Shown piece by piece: positions 41,776 to 63,508 of a stretch of DNA of 64,000 nucleotides. Positions within the stretch are counted from its first letter, which is position 1. Every line of letters starts with the position of its first letter. Both the position numbers and the translations under genes were made by a program. The notes under the pieces are model-generated. The model saw nothing but the letters and a program-made list of their open reading frames with translations. It was not told the origin of the DNA and did no database searches. This DNA is from Adineta vaga (Eukaryota; Animalia; Rotifera): NCBI GenBank assembly GCA_021613535.1, contig CP075497.1, positions 1,984,001 through 2,048,000 on the forward strand, written 5' to 3'.

Positions 41776-44677
41776 ATGTCCTCCGAAGATGAAGAAATGG
41801 AAGTAAATAAAGAGGAGATCGAAGACGATGATGATGATGATACATCAAGTGATTCTTCTGAAGAACAAATTGATGATGCTAAACAAGAAAATGAATTAAT
41901 TGCACTTCGTGAAACTGTTCAATCAAATTTATATAATTATGATTCTCATATTAGTTATATCACATTAGCTCGTCAGTATGGTAATCTCGAACATTTACGT
42001 TTTGCTCGTGAAAAAATGTCGGAAGTCTTTCCATTAACTGAACAACTTTGGCTTGAATGGATTTCTGATGAAAAACAATTATTAGTCTCAACAACTGAAG
42101 AAAATCCAAAATTAATTCAATTATTTGAACGTGCGATTCAAGATTATCTATCAATAATGATTTGGATTGAATATGTTCAATACCGAATTTCATATTATGT
42201 TTCCAAACAGGCGGTTGAAGAGTTACGAACTTTATTTGAACGTGGACTTAGTTCATGTGCTTATCATTTAACAAACGGAAGTCTTCTTTGGGCAGCATAT
42301 ATTGAAACAGAAAAGGCAATTCTAAATGGAATTTATTTGAATTATAAACAAAATAATGAGAATTCAGATTTGAAAGAAAAGATTTTTCAACATGTCGAAC
42401 ATATTTTAACATTATATCGTCGACAATTAACAATTCCTTTACGTGGAATGAATGACATTTATTATAAAGATTACAATGAATTTTGTCAACAATATAAAGA
42501 ATATTTACCAACGAATTATACGGAACAATATGATTTGAAATTGAAACGAGATTTTGATCGTGCATTTGAACGTTTAGAAAAATGTGAAAAATTTGAAAAG
42601 GAATTAGAAGATACAAATAGAAGTGCAGCAACTTATAAGAAATATATTGCATTTGAAAAAGATCCAGCAGGAATTCAATGTCTCTATGAACGCGCAATCG
42701 GTAAGAATAACGTGAAGTAACATGATTAATTGATTGAAATTTTTATTTTAGTTGATAATTGTCTTGACGGTGATACATGGTTATCATATACTAATTTTGT
42801 GGAAGAATCCAATCTTTCTCCGACCATTCGTCAATCAATTTTTGAACGTTCATTACGTAATTGTCCATGGGTAGCGGGATTATGGATACAGTATGCTGAA
42901 TATATGGAATTGAGTAAAACTGCTGATCATACCCAATTAAAACAGATCTATGATCGTGCTTTAAATTCTGATCCAACAAATTTAGTTTCATTTGTTGAAA
43001 TACAATTATCATATTTTCAATATCGTCATCGTCATTATCTTCAACATTTGAATACACCTGATCAATGTGAAACTTTAAAAGAAGAAATTCGTCATGCATG
43101 TGAATCTGCTTGTAATCAATATCAAGAATTGTTTCTTTCATCAGCTGATCCAAAATTATTCTTGAAATATAATGCTCAATTAGAACTCTATTGGATTCAT
43201 TTAGAAGTTCAATCATTTCGTTCTATTGTACAAGCACGACAAATTTGGAATGGTCAAACATTAATGAGTAAATCACATAATCAATTAATTGCAAATCTTT
43301 GGAAGAATTATTATTATACAGAAATTCATTATGGAGATGAAAAACATGCGAGAAGAGTTTTATATCGAGCTGTAAATCATGTTGAAGCAATGGATTATCC
43401 AACAAGTATTTGTGAACTTTTATTAGATCATGAAAAAAAATATGGAACAATTGAACAATTAAAAGAAACAAAAGATTTATTGAGAACTGTTCAAAAGAAA
43501 TTCATTCCAAAAGAACAACCACAAAAACAACAAGTCAATAATAAAAAACAGAAAGATTCAAAACCAAAATCAAAGAAAACGACAAATAATCAAATGGATA
43601 CAAGTAGAATTTCTTTTCTTTAAATTCAAATTCAAAAGTACTTACTTCTCTTTCTTTATTTTAGCTGCTCCTCCTGTTCATACTAATGGTAATACAAGTA
43701 ATCAACAAAAATCATCACCTCGGAAACGAAAATTATCACCCGAAGAAGCACAAACTGTTAAAAAGAAACCCACACCTGCAACGATCGATAGTGATGGTTT
43801 CAAAATTCCTGCACCGCCACCACCAACAGTAGCAACAGCAGCAGCAACCCCAATTCTATCTTCTTCAACACCTTCTTCTACTAAAACATTCATTAAGCCA
43901 GCAGATATCGATCATCTCAATACTGTATTTGTTGCTAATCTTGCTTATGAAACCGATGAAGAAAAGATTCGTGAAGCACTTTCAGCCGCTGGCTCAATAA
44001 AAGCCATTCGTATTGTTAAACATGAATGGTCCGGTAAATCGAAAGGTTTCGGTTATGTTGATTTCGATACTGTTGAAGGTTCTCGTCAAGCATTAAAATT
44101 AGATCATACACCAATTGATGGTCGTCCAATGTTTGTTAGTGTTTATGATCCGAATAAATCTACCTCAGATGATTTATCAAAGAAATTTAAATATTCAACA
44201 AAACTAGAACAAACTAAATTATTCATATCAAAATTACCATTTTCAGCAACGAAAGAACATGTTGAGAAAGTGTTCAATGAAAAAGGTTTTCAAGTTAAAG
44301 ATGTTCGTTTAGTTACACATAAAAGTGGAAAATCCAAAGGACTTGCTTATGTTGAATTTCATGATGCACAAACAGCTTCTCAAGCACTTATTCAAGTTGA
44401 TGGAACAGTTCTTGATGGACACACAATCAGAGTTGCTATTAGTAATCCACCACAACGTAAAGATCCAATAAAGTCAACATCTGATGAAACGAAACCGACA
44501 TCTTTGGGTGAAGCACCGAAAGCTACAGGACCAAGAGGTAGAGGACACTCACAGATTGCATTAGTACCAAGAAGATTAGCAATCGGTACCACAACACCCA
44601 AAAGCCAACCAGCAACAGTCATGGCAAATACAAAGAATAATGATGACTTTAGAAAAATGCTTTTAAATGAGAAATAA
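41776..44677 (+). CDS. SART3: SART3/Tip110 (U4/U6 recycling factor); 3 exons
   Basis: Acidic N-terminus, HAT repeats (FPLTEQLWLEW, ERSLRNCPW), two RRMs (SGKSKGFGYVDF, SGKSKGLAYVEF) and the C-terminal LSm-binding NDDFRKML. Introns at 42701-42751 and 43604-43664. Confidence 0.95.
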
Positions 44678-45142
44678 ATTCTTTTTTCGTTGTGGATCTT
44701 TTTTCGATGATTTGTAATTTATATTAAAAAAACAGATAAAAAGTTAAAATTGGATTACTTCATGTATTTTCTGCGATCGTTAGTCATACAAATCGTCGTA
44801 GGAAGAATCATTTCCTTTTCGAGTCTATTCCAGAAACTTCTAATGTTATTGTTTGATATAGCTGATGAAATAAACTTTTCAATGATTAAGTACACGAGAA
44901 TTTCCATGAAAAAAAAGTGGACAAGTGTCGAGTTAATTACGAGTTCAGAATTAATAACCCGAGGGCAATTTAATTCCTTTGTCCAAGTATGCTTCAGGCT
45001 CAAACGGAATGAAACTCGCAATCACGGCTTGTCCGATTTAAGAATACGATGAAAAAGGTATTTATTCTGTTTTATATTAGTGATGGTGCAATATTTTTTC
45101 ACTCCTCTCAATTTATTACCTATGATCAACGAGCACGTCGAA

Positions 45143-45238
45143 ATTGCATCACGGTTTGGCAAGACCCAACATAGCAACGGTTGCGCAAGATTTCATCAGA
45201 CTTGTTCTAGCTTCTTCCTCGAGATAGAAAGTATATAA
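45143..45238 (+). promoter_or_regulatory. TATA box with C/EBP-ATF (CARE) and C/EBP sites
   Basis: ATTGCATCA 45143-45151, TTGCGCAA 45181-45188, ATTTCATCA 45190-45198, TATATAA 45232-45238. Confidence 0.55.
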
Positions 45239-45281
45239 GTCGCATTGCAAGTCGAATGGATTCAGTTTTCATCAACAAACA

Positions 45282-46011
45282 ATGCCTTCCAAACGTCAAT
45301 CACAAAATGCTTCACTTGCGCCTGAACAAAAACCAACAAAATCAATCGTTGCATCGCACGTTTCAACAGGCGAAAATGTTAACAAAATTATGATCGATTT
45401 AGGACACAATTATGTGGGTGCGGAAAAAGTTTCTCAACTTTATGGTAAAGATGGAAAAGCAATTTCTGCCATTCGCATCGATTTTAGAACGGAAAATCTG
45501 GCAAAATCCATTCTCGATCAAGGTTTCATTCTCATCGATGGAAAACGATGTCCAGTTCGACCATATCAACCACTCATCTGTCATCGATGTCACGAAGAAG
45601 GACATCATGTTTCTCAATGTCCACAAAAACCATTGACGGAACAACGTATCATGGAATTGCTCAGACAACAACAAATGTAAGATCAATCATATCACTCTCA
45701 TTTCATCTATTTCTTTTCTCTTTCACAGGCAACTTCAGTCGATGATGAATGCATTTGAAAACAAATGGAATGCACAATTATCATCATTGAATACTTCTTC
45801 GACTTCGTCGTCGTCGTCAGCGAATAATAATAATATTGATAAACTGGTTCCAATTGTGAAAGAATTGACAACTGTTTGTCAGCAATTCAATCAACAAAAT
45901 GTTCAGATACAACAACAACTCAATGGTGTTGTTAATCGAGTACGAGATGTACAATTACAAGTAACAAATGAACAAGTACGATTACCATTCTTTGCTCAAA
46001 ATGGACATTAG
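45282..46011 (+). CDS. LINE ORF1/gag-like RRM plus CCHC zinc-knuckle protein with Gln-rich coiled coil; 2 exons (copy 1)
   Basis: AIRIDF..ILDQGFILIDGKRCPVRPYQPLI-CHRCHEEGHHVSQC (CX2CX4HX4C). Intron 45677-45728 joins the two ORFs in frame. Confidence 0.85.
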
Positions 46012-49000
46012 AAATGAAAAAATAAAGCAACGATTTATTATTTGGAAAGAAACATCTAGTCGAAGTTGTGATAAAGATATTTTTCAAATTCAAGACGTTT
46101 ATCAGTTTTCTAGGAAATTCAAAATTTTATATTTATATAATAAAGAAATGAAATATATCTCTGACATAAAACAAACTATTTATACACACATGTATGTTAT
46201 TCTGTCTCATAGATATAAATCATGATAGAAACATCTGTAATCATATTCTCTCTTCTCTTCAAGGTTCATTCTATGATCTAATCATTCTAAAACCATGAAA
46301 TCATGTTCTCGGAATGAATAACTAATGAATTTCTTTCTCCTGACACAAACTATTTGTGACAAACGTGATGAATTACAAAATCATATCATGATTTACTTCG
46401 AGAATTAATCATTCAATTCTCTTTTACATTTTAAAAATACATCGGAAATGAACATTAACATTCTATTGAATTGCATATGAATAAGAATGATTTCAAACAA
46501 TTTACGATGACATCGATGATCTTCAAAAGAAGAAAAGAATGACGATTTTATTAGACTTCTTTTATCATATAAAGTTCGATATGATTTTGTCAATTAGTTC
46601 TTATCAGACTGACTGATATGAATCAAATTAAACTTAAACATCAAAACTAACGATGACAATCAAACACTTTGAATTCAAGTGAATTTAGGTCATTGTTACT
46701 ATATTCTATTTTCATTCTGTCTACTAATAAAAGAATTGATCATATTCATCTATATAAAGAACACTTCAATTGTCCCGTATATTATCAAAAGAGAATGTCC
46801 AGACAAGGGGTTTCTTTGTTGAACACAAAGTAGATAGTTAAATTCAAATCAATCAACTAGAACTATAAGACAAAGTAGTATATTAACAAATGAAATTTCC
46901 TTATTTTGATCACCTTGATAATGGTTCAATAGATCACTACAAACTTTCTTTTCTTTGCTTGATTTAATTGAGATTAAGAAAGATCTCTTCTAATATGCCA
47001 ATTAGAATTAAATAAGCTAACTGATGATGCAGAAAGATTCATTCCGGTATAGTTAATTTATCTTTAGATTGTCTAGAAAAACAATCATTCGTATAACTTC
47101 TATTGATTTGGTTTGTTAGCGAAAGAAAAACAAATTATTTCATCGTATAACCTTCGGATATCCGGAGATAAGATTTCCCTTTGTCAAAACATCTCTTATG
47201 TATATTTTCAATAAGAACAAAAGAAAAAATCATTTCTTCTGCTACATGATGATTAGCTCGATATAACATCAAGCCTTGGGTGATTATCGAATGTTCCCTA
47301 TGGTGTATAAGATTCTATATCTAAGAGTGTCAACATCTTCGAACAAAAGAACAGATTATATATATCTATCTACCGAGAAGAGAAAAAAAAGGCAATATCG
47401 AACATCGTTATAGAAATCTATTTCTCCTTGGTTGTCTTGTTATGATTGTATGTCAAAATGTGTCTTATGTGAATGTATATCTTCGATGAGTTAATTACAC
47501 TTTCCCATATTTTGCAGTACACTTGAGAAAAAGAAAAAGGCCGATTACAACACACGCTCATGTTAATAAGCTAGTTGGAGACCTAATGTCAGCAAATTTT
47601 TTTTCTTTTTCTTTATTCTATTCCATTCCTTCTTTTTCTTCTCTTTGGTCAAACAAAGGGTAGAAGATCTAATTTCTCGTTCATATATACACACCAATTT
47701 ATGATGTGAAAAAAGGAAGTGCAAAGAAAAGGCATTGAACTTTTTACGTCATCATCTTATAGGAATATGATCGAAGTACTATTGTTTGTTCATTCGATTG
47801 GCTCTAACCATCTAAAGTTCAATCAAATCGTCAATAATGAATCATTTTTTTCCATCAATATAAAATTTGATGACATTCGTTACATACTGTGTTCTCGAAT
47901 GCGAAAGTTCGATGAATGGATTAGCAGGTGTTTGTTTACAATGATTCCATTGAGAAGAAGAATGAAGAACAAGCCGACAAAATTAGCTGCAGCTGTTTAG
48001 TGTTATTCGACTTAGAGTGAGAAGCTAGTTGAGATATGATTTCATGCTGGTTTTATCAAGGTTTTATTGACACTCGAAGATTCAACCGAAATGAACATGT
48101 AATACTCTTTTCTTCTTCTCTTGGTCAATAACCTTTTCGAACTTGAATGATGATGATGATGATAGTGCTCATTTGTCTGTTGATTGAGAGCGTGTTTATT
48201 TCCTCTAGTAAAGATCTAACATGATTGTACGGTGTACAGCCGATGGCACTAACTATTGCTTATGCTCACGCAATTCTCTTTTTTTTCCCGTTCTCATTAT
48301 GTCAGTATATATATATATGGATAAATGTATGTAGATTACGTGTTCTGGAATTAGCCGACACAATACATGACATACGACGATGTGAGGAAAGCATGAATCT
48401 ACTCACAGATGGTCAAAATTAGCAAGTAGCAAAGCCTTTGGACATCACGAGCGGTATTGTACTAACGACTCATCACAATAATTATAGACAAGTGCTTTTT
48501 GATTGTTCTTTCTATATTTAAGTTTGCATCAATAAGATACACACTTGTCATCGGTTATATACACATCCGTTCGATTGGCACTAGTAGTAGTAGCAATAGA
48601 ATAGCCTTCGAGTAGGTCATCTTTTCTCTTTTCTCATCATGCTTTTCAGAGAATCAAGAGAGAAAGATACACACACACACATATACACAAAGCCAAGTGC
48701 TTGATGGTGTTCCCTTCTTCTTTCTTACTTCCGTCCATTATAGACTTAACTTCCAGTTCTTTCTCTCACTCTCCTTTATATGTTAGATTCGGGTGTCGCC
48801 TACTTTTCCCTTAAGTCGGCATTCGTATATACAACAAAACCTTCCTAATAAAAAAAGAGAAAGAGAATGAATAAATCGTTTACCCCTTATTTCAAGGTAA
48901 TCAATTGCTATTAAATGATTGTGTTCATTTATCCATTCAATCGATCGTTTGTTCGTCAAGCAAATTATCCATATCGTATGCGTGTGAATTTCTTTGAAAA

Positions 49001-52000
49001 CATAAAAACGAGAACATGAATCTTTCTAATTAGAGACACACTCATTGAAGACTAACAATAAGATTGATATCGCACGAAAAATAGACATGATTTCTAATTG
49101 AATATAAAGACATCTTCTTTCGAAACAGTGAACACGTGTATGTAAGTTTTCTTTTCTAAAATTTCGAGTTCTTCTTTTTCTTTTTGATAATCATCTAATC
49201 TTTGTCTTACACGAATTAATCGTCTTTCGTTCGTTTCATCTGATTATGCATCTTTATATCTATTCGATCATAATCAAATATATTTTGTTATTGTTTTTCT
49301 TCTTCTCTTCTCTTCTCTTCTCGTCATCAGATGTAGCAGATGAACATCCGTGTCTATATAAACTACATAATTTCAATCTGATGCCGCATTTCCATTTCTA
49401 TAGTCGAGACGATTAATGAATATTCAACACGAAAAGTCTGCTTTGCGTGTCAAACGAACATCTGACGACGTTCAATGTCAACAAGTATCGTTTAATCACT
49501 ATCTTTTCATATATATATATATAGAGAGAGAGAGAGTGAAAGAATGAAGTTTATTAACACATTTCTTTCGGTGAGTTTTAAAATGCATTGAACCGCATCG
49601 TTTATCTTGATTATAGAGATAAAAAACATCGAGAACAACCTTGATGGTGCATAATGTTCTGTTTTACAATTGAGTGCGCATAAGAATTTGTCTTATCTCA
49701 TCCTTCTTTTTATACCTTCGAAACCAACAACTGACATTGACTACTAAGACCTTGAATCAAAGGAGAGAATTCTTTGATTCTGTCTAAAAATTTATGCGCT
49801 TGCCTGAACATTCTCATTTCATCATAGCACATCGTAATTTAATCTTTCTCGTTGTATTCCTCTTGCTATTCGTCATTTGACAAGAGAGATCGTTTTACGA
49901 TGTCGTCGACAATTCCTTTTTTTTTCTCTTTTCTCCTCTGAACTCTTTAAAAGAAAGACATTCAAGTTTATTTCTTTTCCTCATTTTTCCTTTTTCTTTT
50001 GTTTGATTGAAATATAATTAGAATGAATAACGAAGGTAACTCTTTTTTTTTCAATATACCACTGTATACATTTGACTTTTCATCTTGATTGCAACTACTT
50101 GATCAGAGAAGAACTATGTTTTCTCATTGTTCTTGAACGAAGTAATTTTTTATTTATAAGAAAGAAAAATTTTCTTGCGATCGAAGAAATGTTAGTTTTT
50201 CTAATTCTTCTTCTTCTTCTTTCTCTAAATTCAATATTTGCGTTCGTTGTGGAAATGATCGACTAGTCATTCGCATATGTACAAGAGAAAACGCCTCATT
50301 CACGCGAATGTATGCTTAGTGATTGATCATTGAGTATACATATATGCATAGAATATGAACAAGGGAAATGGGTTAGCAAATAATCGAAATGAGGAAATCG
50401 AAAGATGAGTAAATGTACATTAGAATTTTCTAAAAATGGTCAAACATAGTTCATTATTATCGAACATAGAAAGAGTGAGTAGAGAAGAAAAAGAAAAGAA
50501 ATGTTCATTCGTTCATATTTCTTTCTTTCCAATGCCTCGATGAACAAAATTGTAATCTAATTTTTCATTTTCTGACAGCTTGTATATTGAGCTGTTTTTG
50601 TGTTATGGTATCATTATTCATTTATATCACATATTTTTTTCATTTGTCACCTAAATATTCACGCTTTCACTTTTATTCTATTTCTTCTTCTCCTCCCCTT
50701 GCGTCTAATACCTCGTTATACAATAATAATAAATCGATTGTAATAAAAAGAAGAATCCTTGTTCTTAATCGATATAAAGAAATCAGATTACGAATTAAGT
50801 TGAACGTTTTTCTTTTCGTTAAACATGTCGTGTCATCTTTTAACAATACTATTCATAAATTAAATCATGTAATATATGAGAATAGAATATGTACATGTAT
50901 GTGTGTGATCATGATCATTTTATCAATTGTTTAAATGTCTTTATTATATATATATTTGTGTGAGAGAGTTCATACATCTATTCAAGATAACCCTGCGGCG
51001 TCAATGTTCCCATTACTAACTAGATCGTATGTATAGTAAAGATATTTTCAATTTTTATTGTCAATCGATAGGGTGGTATGGACAACTATCGAGGATACAG
51101 ATCATTGAACGCAAAGAGGTTGATGAATTGCCTGTGATTTGCCCTGTGCTATGTGTATACATATACATATATATATATATATATATATGAGAGCACCTCT
51201 AATTGCCGGTGGTAGTTGAGATATGAAAGAAAAAAGGAGAGAGAGAGAGCGAGAATGTCGATTCATTGAACATCGAAGAGTATATAGATGTGATTCAAGT
51301 TACAATAAGAACCAAGGATAAGTTGTTCGATTTGAGTTACCTTTGTAGATTTCTTCTAAAAAGAAATAAAAGATGATAGTGTTAAACAAGTATCATTAGA
51401 TCAAGTAGAGTTTTAGTTTTCTTTTTTGTTCAATTAGGTTTTTTTTATTCTTCAAGAGATCAAATTTTTTCTTTTTTCATTTTAGATAGATTATAAATAG
51501 AAACCCTAGAGGTAAAAAATTACAAAGATAACGATGTTATTCAATAAATCTACATCAAATTCATTCCTTTCTCTTTCTTTCTTTTCTCTTTTGTTTTTCT
51601 TCTCTTCTTTTCTAAACATGTTAGTCATATGTTTATCGAAATAGTAGTGGTCATTCAGAACGACAACGACGAGACGAGAAGGTAAGAAGAATACACATAT
51701 ATACATCGAGTGGCATCTAATGATGCCTATAAGCAAAACAGCAGCTTTTGTAGAAAAAGAAATAATTTAGATGTTGATTAGGATAGTGTTAGATCTTTCT
51801 TTTTGTATCTGTCCCGGAAGATGATGAGATCGTGTACGTTTTTTTAAGCTAAAGATGTATATATATATATACATGATGATTACCAGACAGGCAGACAACG
51901 AATCTTTTTATCTTGATGTGTATGTATAACGTTGTTTGGACTCGTAAATCACTTTCGGTCGAACACACACACGTACACATTCTTATATATATATCTATCT

Positions 52001-55000
52001 ATATAGATGGATAGAAAGAAGTAGAAGAAAAAGAAAAGAAGTATACGAGGATATGTCCCTTGAGCAGCTGGTGCTAATCAGAATTGATTTGCGTGTATCT
52101 TCAGTCAGTGTACTGACTGGATCATTAGAGACCCATCTGCGAAATGAGCCGATCAATGAATGTTAGTTAGAAGTTGTGAACGATTGATTTATTTTCTATG
52201 TACATTTGACCACGCCCGTCTGTCAATGCTAGTAAACTTTCATATGTGTTCAATTGATTATTGACGATGAACACCTTGAAAAGAATTTTGATTCTCATAA
52301 TTGAATAGAGTGAATGAATGTTCATTGAAAAGTCCTGTCATAATAATTGTCGTTTCGTGTAGTAGTTTTTCTTCTTCTATATACACGAATTCTACGTTCA
52401 ACAGCTGGAGGTCAATGATGGCACTCCACCATCATTTTTCTTATTCGCATGTGGACGACGATGATGATGATGATGATGATCAACATCATTCATATGTATA
52501 CTGAACATTTATCGATGACACGCACACAGACATACACGGTTCACATGTTACTTTTTCCTTCTTTTTCGTCGAACTTTTCTAAGTGAGTAATAAACAGTTG
52601 GAAATTCGAACATATGTGTGAAGCTTTATTCACGGTACAACTGATTTCCTCTATCTGCTCGATTACATCGTTGATCAAAATGTTTATCGATTTTGTTGTT
52701 GTTATTCGATTTTTCAAAAGAATCAATAGAAATTTCCGGGAATGAAGCCTGGAATCGAAATATAAACAAAACTATGAGCAGGTGAAAGTCAAACGATACA
52801 AAAAATAGATAGATATGTATACACATTTAGCCATCTGCGTTATATTCGTGATTATTTTATCTATTGAAGAAAAGATCCTTTTGTCTATTCTATTCACTAA
52901 AGAGCATCATTTCCTTATCATGTCTCCTGTTGCGGAGTTCTATCGTAAAAGATTATAAGAAAAGAAAGCAAATGGATGAGAGGGAGAGAGAGAGAGAAAA
53001 AGGTCATGCAATCACATAGTCTAGTTCATATTTTTTTCAAATCCATGACGTAGTATTAGTGCGTGCGTGTGATCCACAGGGGAGCTTCTGGTATTTTGAT
53101 TCGAATGCCCCATTATTTCCGACAATAAAATCAGTATATAAAAGAGGATACGTGGCCATCACAAAATCATTGTTTTACGTGTCAGAACAAATTAATGATT
53201 AATATCATTATTTGACTTTTTTTGGTCAAGATACTCCTGTCAATTCTTTCTTTCTTTCTTCCTATTCCCATGTTCTAGATCACGGACAAAATATGTATAT
53301 ATATACATATACCTACATTTGTTAGCTTGTTTATATATAGAAATATCTACTATCTATTGACGAACATTTGGTCATTTATTTTATTCGACAGCTATGGTTT
53401 ATGAGGCGGACAACAACAAACATCTATATGTATAGAGAAAGATATAGATAGGAGAAAATGAGATTTATAGACCTATAAAAATGTCATTTCATAAGATAGA
53501 ACTAATCATTCTTGATAGAGTATTTGAAATGCAATTGACAACATATTTTTTCAATCAATAACGATAGTGTTGATTCGATATTCGTTTTATTGACTTAAGA
53601 CCGTTTGGCTTTATATCGTCGTCTGCCATTTGATCTGTCATTTTTTTTCTTTTAATTTTGCTATTGCCTTCTTTTGAGCAGATTATGACTTCTTTTCCTC
53701 TCTCTCTCTCTCTCTGTCTGTCTTATGTCATTCACTTGATGAAGTAAAGTTTGACAAAGAAATGTTCATCTAATCTATCGAAGGGAGGAAAGAAAACGAA
53801 TGATAGAGCGGTCTATATTTTTGTTTTGTTTCAAGAGTCTAGTCTTATCTTTTTAACGAAATCATGAATGAAGAGAAGGTCAAGTGGTAACTACTGTTTG
53901 ATCATTCATGATACATACATGTAACTGAACATGCGCATATGTAGAATGGAAAAAAATCTGCAATGTATCATCGACTTGTATAGAATAGAAAGATCAGAGA
54001 AACAAAACCGAGTGTTCATAAAACAGCTCAAGGCAAATGTGTAATCATTAGATTTTTTTTCAGTGAGAGAGAGAGCAAAAAGCAAAAGAAAAGTTGACAA
54101 TTAGCTTTTGTATTTCTACATGTGTATATATCGAGTATATGTCAATATTTGATACAACGTCTCTCTTATTTTGCCTTTCGATAATGATCGTATAGGTACG
54201 ATAATCTTTCCTACGAAATAAAGTCGTAGATGGCGGCAGCACTTGTACATTTAATTTCAACATAGAGTGAGAGAAAGAGAGAAGAGTAAATAAGAGATCG
54301 AGTATGTTTGAACAGTTTAAAGTCCTCACCGAGATGATCGAAGGAGAGAAGAGAAGAAGAAACAACGATTGATCGAGCATGATCCGTGTGAAAACAATGA
54401 ACACAAGGATACCTTAGAAAGTCAGTTCGATAGAGAGACATAGAACTGCAAGGATATATGATGTAATTTGATATGTACATGTTTACCAGAAGCAAAAAAA
54501 AGAGAAGGAAGAGGTAAGTTCTTTTCATCATTTTTTGTTAATGTTAAATTCAAATCAAAAGTTAGGTAATGTACAAAGAAGAAATGATTTCTATTTCTAT
54601 TAGAAAATGTAAAGATTATAAGATACTAAATTAAATCTTTGCTTTTTCCCCTTCTTCTTCTTCTTCTATTTCATGCGAGACACGACCATTAACAAGAGAA
54701 TAGCAACACATTATAAGAATGATGATGATTTTGTGTTAGGAATGGTCAATAGTCATCAAGGGAATTACATTCAGCATGTCTCCTATTGACCAGTGGTCGT
54801 ATTTTTCTCTTCACGCTTTTTATTCATCTTTTTATACACTCTCTTGTCATAATTATTCAAATGGTTCATATTTCTCGCCTCGTCGCGGCGATAGATGTAA
54901 CTGATCCCTTTTAACATTCGTCCTGGTCGAGACGGAAGGAAATCTGTCGTGTGACTTGACATAATTGTCCTTTAACATTCGTTCATACACTGTGTCATCA

Positions 55001-56638
55001 TTTCATTTTCTATTTCTCTCGACATATATATTACGCTAGGGCACGACACTCTATGATTAGATGTTTTTTTTGCTTTCTAGTTACTTGTTAGAACATGCAT
55101 TTACAATTAGCTATTCATTCATTCATTCATTCTGTCTGTCTAAACTTGAACATTATACTTGTACTATTCACATTTTCTTCACTCGATGAGTACTAGTTAT
55201 TTTTTCAAGTGTAGATACAGTGAAATTTGAGTCGGAATTGATTTGAACTTAAATTGACTTTTACTTGCGTCATAGACTTATGCGAAACAGAATGAGGGAT
55301 CAAATGTAAGAAGGTATGTTTTTTTAAGCCGGATAGACACACAGAATACCTTTTTTTTCTTTCTAATAATATATATATTTATATATAAATACATTGTTAA
55401 TCGAGCTCTAATGTCACGTCATCAATGTTGAAAAAAAAACGAAGTGTTGATCAAACTCCCACTTGCGTCATCCATTATGTATTGACACTTGGTTTTTGTA
55501 CCGGTATATTTGAACATCGACATGCCCCCATGACGTATTAAATGCTCATTATGATGATGGTGGTGGTGGTCAGTCGTCGCCGCCAGTGGTAGTTACATGA
55601 AAAGAACGAACGAAGAAAAAGAAAAGACGCTAGGCGCGTTCGTTAAAGCGTGAACATCGCTTTTTTTCTTTGACGATTTCATTCTAGACACGGATCAACA
55701 TGAATTGTTACTAAAAGAAAGATGCACATGTGTGGACGATGCCACATAGGCACGTTCGATTTGCCATACGGGCCACTGAACACAGTGTGTGCATACATAA
55801 TACACCCGTAAGGCATGTCGTTGCATAGAACACATTCTTTTTTTTTGTTCTCTCTTCTGTTCGTTCCCTATTCTTCTTTCAAATAGAGCTTACCTGTAGG
55901 CGGTCAGTCATCGGTCGATGGAATGCTAATTAAAAGTGAATCCCTTTTACCCACTCATTCGTCAGCTTTTTTTTCTCTTTATCTTCTTTATTTATAGACC
56001 ATTCATTCCAATGTTTATTTCTGTTGAACAGCCGTGCACATAATGAGCTTTGTTTTTTTCCTTTTACTTATCTGTTCAATTCCAGCAGCATGTTATTTAT
56101 TGTTCTCTATCGAATCTTCTAAATGCACGGCATGTCGTCGTCGCGCACCTGATATTGATTTGCATACGGGACAACATCGTGTGTGTCTGATTGCTGAACG
56201 ATAACCTATTACCATAAATTAACACCGAAGAGAGGAAGAAGGAGAAGAAGAAGATAGAGAGAGTATGAACGCATAAACAAATAGAAGTCGCACCCACGTG
56301 TGACGACAAGACATATATCGATATACCAGAAATGATCAATTCATTCATTTGTTTTTTTTCTATTTGTATATGCGGCAACAAAGATAGTCTAATATTGACA
56401 TTGAATAAATTCGATCGGCTGAATGCCAATGCAATTCTCTCTTTTTTTCTCTCTTTGACATGTGTCAAAAAAAAGATATAAGAATGAGTATCGCGGCATC
56501 GGCATTCCTGATCTAAGGTTAAACATATATATATAAATACATGTTATTATTGCTTCTGTCTATTTTAGATATATAGAAAAGATGGTCTTCTTATTTATCA
56601 CAAAATAGCAATAACAATATCTTTGTATATAGAATATT

Positions 56639-59226
56639 ATGAAAATGTCACTGATGTTCTTTTTATTTATTCTTTTCGGTAAGAATTTAAAGAAAATCTT
56701 TTTGTTTTTGTTTGAATCTTTATCTTTTGCTTTTTCTTTAGTTTCACCTATCTTATCCTTTTCATCAATATCTGATGAATGGCATTCAAAATCTCAGTGT
56801 ACTCAAAAAGAATTTGCTAATCACATGGATATTAGTTGTAAATCGAATGAATTTATACTTATTGGTTGGTCACATTATGGAACAAAGAAATCAGGATATA
56901 ATAAACAAGATCAACAACGGTAAATCTCATTTAAATATTCAATTTGATAAAGAATTTTTTAATACGATTAACAATTTAGATGTGAACCATCTGAAAGTGA
57001 TTGTATTATGGATTATACCCATAAAATAGCTGAACTTTGTAATGGTGCTCCACAATGTGAAGTTATTCTCACTCAACAATTTATTCATAAATGTTCCGAT
57101 GAAGCAACGTATTTATTTATCTCTTACCAATGTATTAATAGTAAGTCGAATAAAATAAATTACATTGATAACTGAATTCCTTCTTTTTTTCTCGAATTAT
57201 AGATTCAACAATTGTTGATGTATGTTCATCACGTAGTATGACATCAACGAATGGTCTTAATATAATTAGTCCATCTTTTCCAAATGAATATCCCAATAAT
57301 GTTAATTGTACATGTAGAATTGAACCAACTGAATCCCATGGACAATCTTTACCAATTGCAATCGATGTTGAGGTAAAAGGAGAAAAAAACATGTTCTTTT
57401 TCTAATCTGAAAATCTTTTTGGTTGATTTTAGAGTCTTTCATTTAATTTACAAGATAATGATTATTTATCAACATCAAAATCTTTATCCTTATCGGGCAC
57501 ACTTCCGTTTGGTGCTTCATTATTCAATGAGATCAATTCTCTTCGTCTTCGATTTTTTACAGATGAAACATTAAGTCAATCGGGATTTTGGATTCGTTTA
57601 CATGGTAAATATTTTCATTCAATCTTTCATCGAAACGATTTTTCTCTCTTAGGATATTATCAATGTAATAAAGATGAATATTCTCTTGGTCCAAAATGTA
57701 TAAAAATATTTCAAGAGAAACAAACATGGTCAAATGCACAAGAGAAATGTCTAGCACTTGGTTCACGTTTAATTTATATCAATGATATTGTACAAGAAAA
57801 GAAACTTGCGTATTTTCTTTCAACAAATCAACAACAAACATCATTTTGGATATCCGATGAAAAAGATAAACATAATGGTAAGAAAAATAGACTTGAAAGA
57901 CAATTTATCGTAATTTTCAATTGTTGTTTTAAAAGTTCGATCATGGTGGCCATGGCGATCATCATCGGAAGAAGGTAAATGTATTCTACGGACACAAGAT
58001 GGTTGGTTTAAACGACCTTGTCATGAATTACAAGCATTCATTTGTGAACGAGATACCGATCAACAATCTATACCTCTGACTGTTCGTTGTGGAAATGATC
58101 AAGTACCTTTATCAACGACAACGATCACAACAACAACATTATCATCCTCAATACGAACAACTATCATAACAACAAATGCAGCAGTCCGAGCGTCACCTCC
58201 GACAGTTTCGTTTGTTCAACCTCCTATTGATCAAGTAGAAATTTCATCATTAGCTTCTAAAGAACATATTTTCGTTCCGGCAATTAATCCGGAACAAAGT
58301 TTAACAACCGTTGAACCAAAAACAAATTCATTTGATCCAAGTATGAAATGAACATAATTTGTTCTTATTTAATTCATAAATCAATTGCTCTTTTTCTTAA
58401 AGATATTCTTGCTGCTATATTAGGTGGAATAGCAATTGCGATATTCTCTGTAAATATTATCGTTTGTTATGTATGTAAAAGGTAAAGAATACTTTTGAAT
58501 ATCTCATTAAAAGGTTTAATTGGACTCTTTTTTCTTCTTCTTCTTTACAGACGAACTCAAAAACCTTCGAAATGTAAAACACCTAATGAATCTCAATCAT
58601 CATTTACTCATGAAGAATTACAACGTAGTCTTATGCAACATTTATATCATGAACAGACAAATACCATCTCTTCTTCATCATCCTCATCATCGAAACATTC
58701 ACAATCGAAATCGAATGATACATCAACGACGACAGCAAATGTCAATCTTCTTCAATTATGTTCTCCACCACATTCTTCAAATTCGTCTCATCCGTATATG
58801 ACTCGTTCGAATGCTGCTGCAACCGCATTATGTTTTCGTAATCCTCATGCAGCTATTCATGGAAATGGTGATCCAGTTGATTATCATGTTTATGAAACGA
58901 TTCCTCCAGAAAATACCAACTATACGATATGTACTGCACATAGTGCGTTTAAACCCGTTCTACAAGCAAATTCGCATACAATTCGACCATTTCTTCCACG
59001 AACAAATATTCTCTATCATCCTCCAAATCCTTCGAAACAGTCTTATGAAATATGTTCTCCAACTCCAACGACTTCTGCTGTTTTAATGCCTGTTTGTTGC
59101 CATCATCATTTATCACAGTGTTCAACAGGAACATTAAGACAACATGTTACATCACAGATTATTCCACCGATACCATCGATGAATACACAAGAACAGATCT
59201 ATGCTGGATCCGAAAGTATTGTATGA
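56639..59226 (+). CDS. Type I receptor: SUEL/Gal-lectin-like, CUB and C-type lectin domains, Thr/Ser stalk, TM, tail; multi-exon
   Basis: Signal peptide; ISC..ILIGWSHYG..ELCNGAPQC..YLFISYQC; IISPSFPNEYPNNVNCTC; KCIKIFQEKQTWSNAQEKC..AFICE; TM ILAAILGGIAIAIFSVNIIVCYV; ends ESIV*. Confidence 0.85.
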
Positions 59227-59534
59227 ACAATTCAATGATTTTTATTGTCATACGAAAACGGTGTTGTCAGATGATTTTAATACTAAGTTCAAATATCAAT
59301 CAGAATCGTTCGCGAGTTGTTTTGCCTTTTCTTTTATAACTGTACTTTTCTTTGTTGATGTTGTTTTTCTTTCTCTTTCTTTACTAATAATTTCTTGTCT
59401 CTTTTCTTTTTCTCTCGCGTGTTTATTCTTTATTTTTGTTACCGGTCCTATGTCCTCTGCAATAAAGATTATTAATCATTTCTCTTTTTCTAATGACATT
59501 TTCAAGAAAAAAAAACAACAACAGAGCATTGCTT

Positions 59535-60893
59535 TTACATGGCTTGCAATCTATCCGTATTCCATAACTGTTTAATCGCTGAGTCGTAACTATCAGGAAT
59601 AAGTCGTGGTTCACGATCGATTTGACGAATTATATTTTGCCAATTTTCGATTAATTTTGCTTTTCTTTTTACATTTTCTTCAAACATTTGTTGATTTATC
59701 TGAACGAAATTTGTTCCCGTTAATTTATCAATTAACTCTTCCCATGATGAAAATGTTTGAATATATGGTAATTGATAATAATCCGCAAATTGTAACCAAT
59801 AACTCATTCCTTCATTTGAAATGATATCTTCCGGTGAATAAGGATGATGTGAATTTGGATGTTGTTTTGGCATATCGGAAAAATTTAAATAAGAACCACA
59901 ATAATGAATATCGATCAATGTTCGATCATAGATAAGTTTTAATTCGACAAGAAATTTAATTGATGGAACAAACATTGGTATTCCTAATGCATATAATTCT
60001 GTTATACCATAACTTAAAACAGCATAAGGTAAGATAACTACAGCACGATGATCAGCTATTTGATCAAGTTCATATCGACCGTAAAGACTTTTAGCAGTAG
60101 CGAAGATAAATGTAGACTTCTTTGATTTAGCAGCTTCTGTCATATTTGCTATTAGATGATGGGATAGATGTTGTAAGGGTCCAACTAAAATTTCATTTCT
60201 TTTTTGTGTAAATTTCGTTATATTAAATGCATACCAAAGAGAATTGGCTGGAAGTAGAATAGCATCTAAACCAGTGTAATATTTAATATATTCTTGATCA
60301 TAGCGACCAGCTGCTGCAAGAAAATGTTTTGGTTGTTGATTTGGATGAACTGATTGTTGAAGATGTTGAATAAGTCGATCGATTTCTGGACGTGAACATC
60401 GTGCAAGTGTAAAACGATGTGCTGGTAACCAAATAACTGTTCGATTAAACGGCATATAAACTTCACATAAAGACATTGGAAACGAACAATAAAATGCATT
60501 AGTACTGAACATAACTGGATCTTTGTGATAAAAGGAGAAAAAATTCCGAATATCATCTTCAGTTAAACGATCACTATGTGATCGATGAGTATGCATTAGA
60601 CGAGCAAGTTGATGTTTTTCTTTTAAGAAAATGATATTTGGACGAGTAAAGGCTTTTATATAAGGATTTCTTCGTCCAACAAGATCAGCAATAATAATAG
60701 TTTGATTTAGACCTTGAAGAAGAGTTGCCGTGTCAACACGACAGCCATCATGATTATTAATAACCCAAAATTTTAATGATGACGATGATGATAATTTTTG
60801 TATGTATACTGATTTAGGATATTTCCAAGTTAGAATAAATAGAAATGAAATAAATAAAATAAAAATTGATATAGTACAAAAATTCAGACGCAT
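59535..60893 (-). CDS. Intronless type II membrane protein, glycosyltransferase (GT-B)-like
   Basis: 452-aa ORF with an N-terminal TM anchor. AVVILPYAVLSYGITELYALGIPMFVP resembles the GT-B C-terminal nucleotide-sugar-binding motif. Confidence 0.8.
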   Translation of the reverse strand: MRLNFCTISIFILFISFLFILTWKYPKSVYIQKLSSSSSLKFWVINNHDGCRVDTATLLQGLNQTIIIADLVGRRNPYIKAFTRPNIIFLKEKHQLARLMHTHRSHSDRLTEDDIRNFFSFYHKDPVMFSTNAFYCSFPMSLCEVYMPFNRTVIWLPAHRFTLARCSRPEIDRLIQHLQQSVHPNQQPKHFLAAAGRYDQEYIKYYTGLDAILLPANSLWYAFNITKFTQKRNEILVGPLQHLSHHLIANMTEAAKSKKSTFIFATAKSLYGRYELDQIADHRAVVILPYAVLSYGITELYALGIPMFVPSIKFLVELKLIYDRTLIDIHYCGSYLNFSDMPKQHPNSHHPYSPEDIISNEGMSYWLQFADYYQLPYIQTFSSWEELIDKLTGTNFVQINQQMFEENVKRKAKLIENWQNIIRQIDREPRLIPDSYDSAIKQLWNTDRLQAM

Positions 60894-61155
60894 ATTATAT
60901 TATTTATGTTCTACTTTGAAATGTAAGATCTATTTATACTTACTCTAATGACTATTCATTTACTTCTCAGTTGATAGATCGCTTTTTTTATATCGATGAT
61001 ATGTATTGAAGTAATTATGCAATCAACTCGCTGTTCTTATTTTACCTTGGTATGTATCAAAGTATCAATAGTTTTATGATATCAATTAGATGTAGTATCT
61101 CTTTATTTGCATAAATATTTCAGAAAAAAATTCTCTAAACTGGAGATCGTGCTTG

Positions 61156-61855
61156 TTAATTACTCATTTGTATATCTCGTACATGATTGACAACACCATT
61201 GAGTTGTTGTTGTATCTGAACATTTTGTTGATTGAATTGCTGACAAACGATTGACAATTCTTTCAAAATGAGGATCAATTTCTCAACATTATTATTATTA
61301 TTATTATTCGTTGACGACGACGAAGTCGAAGAAGTATTCAATGATGATAATTGTGCATTCCATTTGTTTTCAAATGCATTCATCATCGATTGAAGTTGCC
61401 TGTGAAAGAGAAAAGAAATAGATGAAATGAGAGTGATGTGATTGATCTTACATTTGTTGTTGTCTGAGCAATTCCATGACACGTTGTTCCGTCAATGGTT
61501 TTTGTGGACACTGAGAAACATAATGTCCTTCTTCGTGACATCGATGACAGATGAGTGGTTGATATGGTCGAACTGGATGTCGTTTTCCATTGATAAGAAT
61601 GAAACCTTGATCGAGAATGGGTTTTGTCTGAGTTTCCGATTTGAAATCAATACGAATAGCGGGAATTGGTTGTCTATCTGCATCATAAAGTCGACAAACT
61701 TTCTCAACACCCATATAATTGTGTCCTAAACTGGTGATAATTTTGCTTACATATTCATCTAATGGAACTTTTGATACAAGGATTGATTTCGTTTTTTGTT
61801 CAGGTATAGACAAAGCATTTTGTGATTGTCGTGGTGACTGATGTTTGGAAGACAT
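61156..61855 (-). CDS. LINE ORF1/gag-like zinc-knuckle protein; 2 exons (copy 2)
   Basis: Paralog of 45282-46011 with CHRCHEEGHYVSQC. Intron 61400-61451 is at the same position. Confidence 0.85.
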
Positions 61856-61898
61856 TGTTTGTTGATGAATAATGGCTTTATAACACTTACAATACGCC

Positions 61899-62213
61899 TT
61901 ATATACTTTTTTCACAACAGAAGAAAACTTACTCAACGATCATAGAAAAAAAGAAAGTAAATCAGATAGTATGTATAATGATAGAGTCGTTAATTTCTTT
62001 ACCATCGGTAAGAAAACGTCGATGACGTCATTTTGACATGCACTTCTCCTACGTCGTGATAACGGAGATTGCATCATCGTTTTCATCGGCTATAAAAAAA
62101 TGTGACTGTTTGGTTATATCCTAATTCGACATGAATCAAAGTTTTTCCATTATATTGCGTTTGAATTGCGAATACACTTGAAATTTAAGATTAACCTACT
62201 TCCGTATGACTCA
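61899..62213 (-). promoter_or_regulatory. TATA box with CRE, CARE and AP-1 sites
   Basis: TATATAA (minus strand) 61899-61905, ATGACGTCAT 62022-62031, ATTGCATCA 62068-62076, TGACTCA 62207-62213. Confidence 0.55.
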
Positions 62214-62216
62214 TTT

Positions 62217-62278
62217 TTGAGGGTGTGGGTAAGGGTGAAGGATAAATCTCACAACTCAAACCACATCCATACCGTCAA
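62217..62278. repeat. Palindromic TGTGGG-type mini-element
   Basis: TTGAGGGTGTGGGT..ACATCCATACCGTCAA. Confidence 0.6.
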
Positions 62279-62688: not shown

Positions 62689-62798
62689 TTAAGGGGTGGG
62701 TGTGGGTGTGGGTGTGGGTAGGAGTGCTAGTTGTATCTGGCCCCCACCACACCCACACTCACATCCACACACCTACTCACAACCACATCCACCCTTCA
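62689..62798. repeat. Palindromic (TGTGGG)n..(CCCACA)n mini-element
   Basis: TTAAGGGGTGGGTGTGGGTGTGGGTGTGGG..CCACACCCACAC..CACCCTTCA. Confidence 0.8.
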
Positions 62799-62848: not shown

Positions 62849-63508
62849 TTATTCATGATTTTCTTTATTGATTTTTGAATGATTAATAATTAAATATCCT
62901 CGTGACTCTGATGCCATTTTATCTTCTGTACACATCATTCGTACTAAATCTTTCAAAGATAACCAATGATGAGGAAATCTTATGTTATTTGGATCCAAAA
63001 TGAGAACATGATCTGTTTTTGGATTGAATCCACCAATTAAAGCAAAATGTCCACTTTGATGAATATAATCTTTATCTCGAATATAATATTGTCTCCAATA
63101 ATTAATAATAATAAAATTATTTTCGTTAAGAAGATCTTCACGAAATATTTTTTCATATGAATAATTTTGACAATAATGTATTTGAGAAGATATTCCACAA
63201 AGATGAAGAATTTTCGCTAGATTAATTAATGTTATTCCATTTGACATATAATCTTTTGCAATTGTTGAATAAATTAATGATTGATTCCATTTTTGAATTG
63301 GTAATAATGTTTTTAATAATGTTGATATGCAAGCAATACCACAAAATGAAAGATGTTCTTGATATTCAAAATAAGAATTAAGATAATCATATGCAATATG
63401 AAATGATTGAGAAAAAAACTCTTCGCCACTTGACGAAGATAAAGGGATTATCACAGATGGATACCACAGATCTGTTGGAATTTGTGTTTTAAATGTATTA
63501 GCATCCAT
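62849..63508 (-). CDS. Phytochelatin synthase-like protein (catalytic domain only), intronless
   Basis: QEHLSFCG (Gln/Cys), GITL..L, SGHFALIGG (His), VLILDP (Asp), HWLSLKDL..M..D..SRGY; 219 aa. Confidence 0.9.
   Translation of the reverse strand: MDANTFKTQIPTDLWYPSVIIPLSSSSGEEFFSQSFHIAYDYLNSYFEYQEHLSFCGIACISTLLKTLLPIQKWNQSLIYSTIAKDYMSNGITLINLAKILHLCGISSQIHYCQNYSYEKIFREDLLNENNFIIINYWRQYYIRDKDYIHQSGHFALIGGFNPKTDHVLILDPNNIRFPHHWLSLKDLVRMMCTEDKMASESRGYLIINHSKINKENHE

Follow-up and report, generated by a model that had tools for sequence, protein, structure and literature searches.

In the bdelloid rotifer Adineta vaga, two genes represent a family whose RNA-binding module probably descends from a LINE ORF1 protein

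Introduction

Two short, intact genes on contig 6 of the bdelloid rotifer Adineta vaga, here called A (45282-46011, + strand) and B (61156-61855, - strand), encode proteins that resemble the first open reading frame (ORF1) of a long interspersed nuclear element (LINE), which raises the question of whether they are pieces of a retrotransposon or genes of the rotifer itself. Positions are counted from the first letter of the window, the 64,000-nucleotide stretch 1984001-2048000 of that contig, in an assembly of 100.8 Mb and six contigs. By copy number, intron, synteny, selection, and phylogeny, A and B are host genes and not a transposon. We further put at about 80% the probability that they are cellular genes of a bdelloid family in which the RNA recognition motif (RRM) and adjoining CCHC knuckle form a module descended from a type I LINE ORF1.

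Type I ORF1 proteins are defined by an RRM immediately upstream of a CCHC knuckle and occur in the I, Jockey, R1, Tad1, plant L1, and L2 clades (PMC4120745). A. vaga carries one such element, Hebe, a basal Jockey-clade LINE with a 485-aa ORF1 containing three knuckles (PMC2861651). Domestication of LINE ORF1 is rare, and the rotifer family would be an independent case from a type I ORF1, one that seemingly predates both an apparent large-scale duplication and the split of the bdelloid families, and that carries an intron and visible signs of domain tinkering. The question of how retroelements are restrained in a lineage that has long been asexual is classically asked of bdelloids, and a retained, fast-evolving, and repeatedly remodelled copy of a LINE's RNA-packaging module would be a testable candidate for retroelement control or, failing that, for ribonucleoprotein (RNP) handling during desiccation.

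Gene models and promoters

Genes A and B consist of the following parts. Exons were searched, aligned, and counted separately throughout; the only joined sequences used were the database models P0001, P0002, P0010, P0015, and P0039.

45232-45239, + strand: gene A TATA box TATATAAG, at -50 from the ATG
45282, + strand: gene A start codon, ATG
45282-45676, + strand: gene A exon 1, encoding an S/Q-rich N-terminus, a non-canonical RRM-like domain, a CCHC knuckle, and a conserved PLTEQR linker
About 45330-45572, + strand: gene A RRM-like domain
45579-45620, + strand: gene A CCHC knuckle
45677-45728, + strand: gene A intron, 52 nt, GT-AG, phase 2
45729-46011, + strand: gene A exon 2, encoding a two-helix Q/N-rich tail with a poly-S/poly-N linker
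46009-46011, + strand: gene A stop codon
46021-46026, + strand: likely gene A polyadenylation signal AATAAA, as read from the sequence
61898-61905, - strand: gene B TATA box TATATAAG, at -50 from the ATG
61452-61855, - strand: gene B exon 1, encoding an RRM-like domain and CCHC knuckle
61400-61451, - strand: gene B intron, 52 nt, matching the gene A intron at 51/52 positions
61156-61399, - strand: gene B exon 2, with a tail about 15 residues shorter than that of gene A

In gene A, the GTAAG donor at 45677 is followed directly by an in-frame TAA that closes the first frame, and a pyrimidine-rich tract precedes the AG after which the frame is restored and stays open to 46011. Gene B repeats this arrangement, and the two exon 1 products are 73% identical. 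A first-pass annotation of the window, made from the letters alone, had described two intact paralogs with an RRM-like region, a single knuckle, and a Q/N-rich helical tail, sharing a 52-nt intron at one site and a conserved box about 50 nt upstream; Pfam, AlphaFold2, and the splice-site analysis bear out each of these points, the intron being GT-AG and phase 2 and the box being TATATAAG at -50 in both genes. A TATA-type box at the same distance from the ATG is also found in a third A. vaga paralog, C, and in the orthologs on contigs L011, L015, L016, and L024. Our models match the NCBI entries I4U23_027881 (225 aa, gene A) and I4U23_027885 (215 aa, gene B), both annotated as "hypothetical protein." An exact look-up of the two spliced proteins (P0001 and P0002) in assemblies retrieved no transcript-derived record.

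Protein domains and predicted structure

Each protein contains one C-X2-C-X4-H-X4-C knuckle, which Pfam scored as zf-CCHC_2 at 24.4 bits in A and 27.0 bits in B (cut-off 27). Upstream of the knuckle, which occupies residues 100-113 of the modelled protein, AlphaFold2 predicts a beta-alpha-beta-beta-alpha-beta fold of the RRM type over residues 21-94, with a confidence score (pLDDT) near 90 in that region and a mean of 75 overall, and solved RRM domains superpose on the model with Z of about 10 over about 80 residues. Pfam RRM_1 gave no match to the family's proteins at E values up to 10, so the RRM is non-canonical; on reading the sequence, the aromatic residues of RNP1 and RNP2 are largely missing. 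The tail is modelled as two long helices (120-157 and 164-216), for which Pfam returned only noise.

Structural searches of the Protein Data Bank (PDB) with Foldseek and VIA retrieved generic RRMs. Matches to SFPQ and NONO had a huge root-mean-square deviation and were set aside as reflecting merely the combination of an RRM with long helices. As for the other class of ORF1 proteins, the family has no Pfam match to PF02994 (L1 ORF1p, Transposase_22), and L1 ORF1p was absent from the PDB sequence matches and from the listed fold matches. Searches of the ESM Atlas by features and shape yielded leads only, all below 0.9 or with TM scores below 0.5, and the language-model neighbors, likewise only leads, were arthropod proteins of 425-619 aa, one set of which carries PRE_C2HC.

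Kinship with LINE ORF1 proteins

Searching the whole genome with exon 1 recovered A, B, and paralog C (contig 3, 37% identity), together with long frames of 388-687 aa. These long frames, the sole matches outside the family, are of the LINE ORF1 type with three CCHC knuckles. Three of them (L007, L008, and L009) were checked, and in every case the next frame is an ORF2 with a reverse transcriptase (RT) domain, RVT_1; both complete ORF2s (L007 and L008) also have an apurinic/apyrimidinic (AP) endonuclease domain. Since long three-knuckle frames are followed here by an RT-bearing ORF2, the elements are true LINEs:

C5:2533232-2537760: LINE L004/L007, open three-knuckle ORF1; open ORF2 with endonuclease and RT
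C3:3543478-3548171: LINE L008, open three-knuckle ORF1; open ORF2 with endonuclease and RT; ORF1 and ORF2 overlap at ATGA
C3:17251004-17256029: LINE L006/L009, open three-knuckle ORF1; ORF2 with RT domain only, running to the end of the fetched stretch

Aligned with hhalign against a profile of ten LINE ORF1s, the short family scored a probability of 99.4% (E 5e-21, 33% identity) over residues 17-117, a span that takes in the RRM and the first knuckle of the LINE proteins, and pairwise BLASTP to the nearest LINE ORF1 gave 3e-13. The C-termini of the LINE ORF1s follow the same general plan as those of the family, a low-complexity linker and then helices. The first-pass annotation had asked whether ordinary host proteins with a CCHC knuckle might be better matches, and they were not: the best relatives outside the family are LINE ORF1s, and a profile search of PDB sequences found only weak knuckle-level matches, retroviral nucleocapsids included, and no host RRM-knuckle protein. 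In architecture, the resident LINEs resemble Hebe, and the closest relatives of the module would be such Hebe-like three-knuckle elements still resident in the genome.

The same similarity would be expected if a LINE had captured a host RRM-knuckle gene, or if both lineages came from an older cellular RRM-knuckle protein, with no domestication at all. A maximum-likelihood tree, in which the LINE ORF1s and the short family form the two sides of one branch (87/89), is unrooted and leaves room for such an origin, as does the fact that the named long matches looked up are also bdelloid (Rotaria and Didymodactylos); however, the layout of RRM then CCHC is general to type I ORF1 across eukaryotes (PMC4120745), the named short-family members are exclusively bdelloid, and no canonical host RRM-knuckle protein matches the family. 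We consider capture or common origin improbable, and descent of the module from a LINE the better account of this distribution.

Evidence that A and B are host genes

A profile search of the assembly found three knuckle-type genes, one double-RRM relative (I4U23_003871, contig 1), and about six LINE ORF1s. The site and phase of the intron are identical in all four A. vaga paralogs (A, B, C, and the contig-1 relative), in the A. ricciae ortholog of C, in an ortholog from Rotaria sp. Silwood2, and in three metagenomic orthologs, while intron lengths range from 52 to 62 nt and intron sequences diverge. An in-frame stop stands right after the donor in the A-type genes and the contig-1 relative and three codons later in paralog C, and the conservation of exon 2 is confined to the spliced frame.

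The position of the genes is conserved as well. In the window, their neighbors include a SART3-like gene (41776-44677; HAT repeats, RRM, and LSM-interacting tail) and a phytochelatin synthase gene (62849-63508). On L011, an Adineta-like metagenome contig of 21 kb, the gene order of window 38.3-52 kb is preserved through a PID-domain gene, SART3, the ortholog itself, and the genes downstream, and on contig L015, SART3 lies just upstream of the ortholog. Within A. vaga, five anchors establish collinearity, in inverted order, between C3:12878000-12887999 and window 40.5-57.2 kb, which places paralog C in what looks like an old duplicated block. No second SART3 copy was found beside paralog C; SART3 is single-copy in the assembly and was lost from the contig-3 block. 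The A. ricciae C-type ortholog keeps its PID-domain neighbor, and in Rotaria the lectin-type gene found downstream in the window (55.8-59.2 kb) still lies within 3 kb of the ortholog.

On the other side of the Rotaria ortholog, the gene upstream (L027/L028, 1-1052) encodes kinase and PCMT domains.

The ratio of nonsynonymous to synonymous divergence (omega, dN/dS) was obtained from Nei-Gojobori counts per exon, with the split codon dropped and 1000 codon-bootstrap replicates. Between orthologs, omega is 0.28-0.46, with intervals that exclude 1 and at most 0.2% of replicates reaching it; exon 2 alone gives 0.26-0.46, and comparisons of A type with C type give 0.41-0.48.

Could A and B nonetheless be remnants of a non-autonomous, ORF1-only retroelement, or recently decayed LINE fragments? 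Their similarity to LINE ORF1 would fit, as would their rather fast evolution (the presumed old duplicates A and C are 37% identical, neighboring genes 60-87% in tblastx pieces), but very low copy number, a chromosomal position shared by several species and by a duplicated block collinear with the window, a conserved intron, an external TATA promoter, and purifying selection all speak for a gene, and no RT, poly(A) tail, or target-site duplication accompanies either copy. A remnant is thus very improbable. The first-pass annotation had proposed host genes derived from a Jockey/I-type (type I) ORF1, flanked by SART3 and phytochelatin synthase and without endonuclease or RT ORF, poly(A) tail, or target-site duplication; it had named syntenic orthologs beside SART3, non-neutral dN/dS, and the absence of dispersed RT-linked copies as points on which the idea would turn. 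The results agree with it on all of these: no RT or endonuclease ORF lies within window 40-64 kb, no poly(A) tail or target-site duplication was found at A or B, whose mutual similarity stops at the stop codon, two independent contigs (L011 and L015) hold SART3-linked orthologs, and apart from the three knuckle-type genes and the one double-RRM gene the matches in the genome are genuine LINE ORF1s with an ORF2.

Relationship between genes A and B

The two copies can be aligned from about 60 nt ahead of the ATG as far as the stop codon; outside these limits identity is about 50%, the level expected by chance. Promoter and intron are therefore inside the copied unit, and B arose as DNA, not by retroposition. 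Within the unit, identity rises from 78% over 45282-45515 to 97% over 45516-45815, including the intron (Fisher p 5e-12), and dS falls from 0.375 to 0.057 in the near-identical tract. Such a shift in identity and dS is a signature of gene conversion between inverted repeats, and the tract reads as follows:

45516-45815 in gene A (+ strand), about 61313-61612 in gene B: gene-conversion tract, by the shift in identity and dS

By these sequence comparisons, B is best described as a copy of A that arose recently at the DNA level, lies 15 kb away in inverted orientation, and has had its 3' half homogenized by gene conversion.

Whether both copies are maintained is a separate matter, since one or both could be unexpressed or decaying, B the likelier of the two given its truncated tail and the decayed small RNA that flanks it (described below). 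Omega between A and B is 0.61 (95% interval 0.39-1.02), rising to 0.70 when the count is confined to the unconverted 5' half. In addition, the B protein ends about 15 residues early, and the small-RNA copy beside it is degenerate. Against decay, both genes have intact frames, splice sites, and TATA boxes, the short end of the B tail resembles the natural end of the C type, and A and B are equidistant from the L011 ortholog (dN 0.290 and 0.297, omega 0.32 and 0.33), so that neither looks like a decaying copy. We regard silence or decay of either gene as unlikely.

Two other features adjoin gene B. One is an intronless 452-aa ORF (59535-60893, - strand) that starts with a hydrophobic segment at its N-terminus and matches nothing in Pfam; its family has eight or more loci in the genome, several with internal stops. 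Between the gene B promoter region and the phytochelatin synthase gene lie telomere-repeat-like tracts, (GTGGGT)4 at 62696-62719 and an inverted ACCCAC-type tract at 62746-62792.

A bdelloid family and its variants

Among 1.8 billion cluster representatives, a profile search returned 318 matches, of which the named short forms are all bdelloid (A. vaga, A. ricciae, and Rotaria). The maximum-likelihood tree joins A to B as sister genes (100/99) and C to the A. ricciae gene (97/90), and it places the Rotaria forms that have two RRMs and no knuckle inside the A type. The family has variants (P0009, P0010, P0014, P0016-P0018, and P0021 from Rotaria and metagenomes; P0019 and P0027; P0024, P0032, P0039, P0044, and P0049): some have two RRM-like repeats with a low-complexity linker in place of the knuckle, some have two knuckles, and in more distant forms the RRM is repeated two or three times. 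Wherever the sequence continues beyond the splice site, the conserved linker is retained, as is the beginning of the tail.

The two window genes are thus paralogs, as first annotated, but the idea of an isolated pair has to give way to that of an older, bdelloid-wide family that includes knuckle-less double-RRM forms. The earlier annotation had recognized no described gene family of this form, and our literature searches by topic and by locus tag likewise found no description. The family is real, bdelloid, and apparently undescribed.

A small structured RNA gene beside gene A

Gene A has a second close neighbor on its upstream side:

44909-45060, - strand: small structured RNA gene, head-to-head with gene A, pol III-like (RNA polymerase III)
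45082-45092, + strand: motif GATGGTGCAAT, whose reverse complement ATTGCACCATC is the upstream element of the small RNA
L027, 5608-5763: small-RNA member in Rotaria
C5:14592828; C3:9850855/9851083/9855487/9855715; C3:14607518; C1:4602966: relatives of the small RNA elsewhere in the A. vaga genome

This 150-nt segment is 71-83% conserved among A. vaga, Rotaria, and metagenome contigs, more than the adjoining coding exon. Its fold comprises a closing stem, a three-way junction, and an invariant internal loop, with a T-run directly after the 3' arm and ATTGCACCATC about 60-70 nt upstream of the closing stem. With a covariance model, seven weaker relatives were detected in the genome; the upstream element and the T-run accompany every one of them, and the element ATTGCAC[AC]A is common to all eight genes. 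In an 11-sequence alignment, which had been fitted to the covariance model, pairing holds in 93.8% of cells and compensatory change is seen at 26 of the 37 pairs, values that none of 500 shuffles reached; slid controls pair at 30-46%. Rfam gave no match. The T-run and upstream element suggest a family of RNAs of about 130-150 nt transcribed by pol III.

A second GATGGTGCAAT copy lies upstream of B at 62068-62078, making two in 64 kb with 0.17 expected, and next to it is a decayed copy of the small RNA (62150-62220, + strand; 16.8 bits, E 0.46). The degenerate RNA and motif beside B indicate that the original duplication from A to B reached beyond the present 60 nt of similarity. No copy of the small RNA was found near paralog C or the contig-1 gene. 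We had considered GATGRTGCAAT/TGATGCAAT as a basic leucine zipper (C/EBP-ATF-like) stress element of A and B and rejected this reading, the motif being the upstream element of the eight small-RNA genes, which explains why the window contains GATGRTGCAAT at only two places, one upstream of A and the other upstream of B. A derivation of the small RNA from the related LINEs was also discarded, none of those LINEs containing it.

Motifs of the TGATGCAAT type, together with a shared 13-mer, CGTCATCATTGCA, do occur 80-220 nt upstream of paralog C (L003, about 2030-2075) and of the contig-1 double-RRM gene (L025, 450-470 and 577-596). In these two genes, which have no small-RNA neighbor, they could be a shared regulatory element.

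The protein gene and the small RNA stay linked, about 170-240 nt apart, in both Adineta and Rotaria even though other neighbors have changed. One speculative reading is that the two form a functional pair, a cellular RNP grown out of the habit of ORF1p of coating RNA from its own locus, while the same family could in parallel act on Hebe-like LINEs as a fast-evolving restriction factor. We give this idea only an outside chance.

Origin and possible function

Our data are most consistent with a founding gene that would have become fixed at one chromosomal site, with its own TATA promoter, one spliceosomal intron past the knuckle linker, and a two-helix Q/N-rich tail for which LINEs offer no counterpart that can be detected. 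This gene appears to be older than the large-scale duplication that gave rise to paralog C and older than the split between Adineta and Rotaria, and it would later have diversified by RRM duplication, loss or gain of knuckles, and local duplication.

Several points weigh against this account. In the exon-2 tail, homology to the C-terminal regions of LINE ORF1s is not detectable (hhalign 5.9%), so the protein is at most half LINE-derived. The direction from LINE to host is argued from distribution, with the family bdelloid-only among named matches and type I ORF1 widespread, because the tree cannot be rooted, and the assignment of the related LINEs to Hebe and Jockey is made by architecture rather than by RT phylogeny. 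Expression and splicing of A and B are read from comparative data and database gene models. Omega values of 0.3-0.6 are higher than a housekeeping gene would be expected to show, and the interval for A against B touches 1. Finally, complex prediction lent no support to self-association of the tail: a homodimer of two copies of residues 115-225 scored 0.25 against a mark of 0.32, a value counted neither for nor against binding.

As for function, the first-pass annotation had put forward a restrictor of retroelements, a stress RNA chaperone, or a condensate-forming protein as candidates. In the model proposed here, the RRM and knuckle would, like ORF1p, bind RNA in single-stranded form, and self-association through the helical tail would build RNP assemblies, by analogy with the RNA packaging and chaperoning known for ORF1p (PMC4120745, PMC6428221) and with L1TD1, a mammalian gene discussed below. 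The likeliest targets may be LINE RNA or ORF1p particles, restricted or modulated as by L1TD1, the alternative being the chaperoning of stress RNPs. We infer that action on LINE RNPs ranks slightly above general RNP chaperoning, in view of the fast evolution, repeated domain remodelling, lineage-specific duplication, and lasting similarity to the ORF1s of resident LINEs, as in conflict-driven genes; L1TD1 shows features of this kind (PMC4161310).

Comparison with known systems

The closest comparison is with type I LINE ORF1p itself, with which the family shares a non-canonical RRM immediately before a gag-like CCHC knuckle, clear sequence homology in that module, and a helical region after a low-complexity linker. 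The rotifer proteins have one knuckle and about 220 aa, whereas the LINE proteins have three knuckles and 485-680 aa. Unlike their LINE relatives, the rotifer genes lack an ORF2, have an intron and an external TATA promoter, and occur in 3-4 copies at fixed syntenic sites, and their tail is not detectably homologous.

Among host genes, L1TD1 was domesticated from L1 ORF1 in mammals (PMC4161310, PMC11925450) and has been called the sole known case of a gene domesticated from L1 (PMC4161310, PMC11014241). Like the rotifer family, it is a lineage-restricted, fast-evolving host gene from a LINE ORF1 RNA-binding protein, with domain duplication in some members. Its protein still associates with ORF1p and RNP granules (PMC11925450), which may serve as a working model for the rotifer proteins. 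However, L1TD1 comes from a type II ORF1 (coiled coil-RRM-C-terminal domain, Transposase_22) and the rotifer module from a type I RRM-knuckle protein. The two would be independent events in different phyla; the rotifer family is multi-membered and its proteins much smaller, with the helical region C-terminal rather than N-terminal. The rotifer family thus appears to represent a rare but known kind of event, the domestication of LINE ORF1, newly seen for the type I module.

The EKA (AVRk1/AVRa10) effectors of Blumeria graminis are also derived from LINE ORF1 (PMC4641428). They share with the rotifer genes the evolution of a protein family from LINE ORF1, but form a large fungal effector family, whereas the rotifer genes are low-copy and syntenic.

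Cellular proteins that combine an RRM with a CCHC knuckle include SRSF7 and RBM4/Lark. The domain order, RRM then knuckle, is the same, and in predicted shape the rotifer proteins are like the RRM-zinc-finger proteins RBM5 and RBM10, but the rotifer family differs in having no match to RRM_1, and the PDB profile search retrieved no protein of this kind. A last parallel concerns possible action. Fv1 is a restriction factor derived from Gag, and factors of the Ty1 type provide another example.

In the latter, p22/p18 is likewise Gag-derived (PMC12530519). Those proteins come from the Gag of long terminal repeat elements or retroviruses rather than from a LINE, but the rotifer proteins may act in a similar way, as diverged or truncated structural proteins that disturb the particle assembly of the element from which they came.

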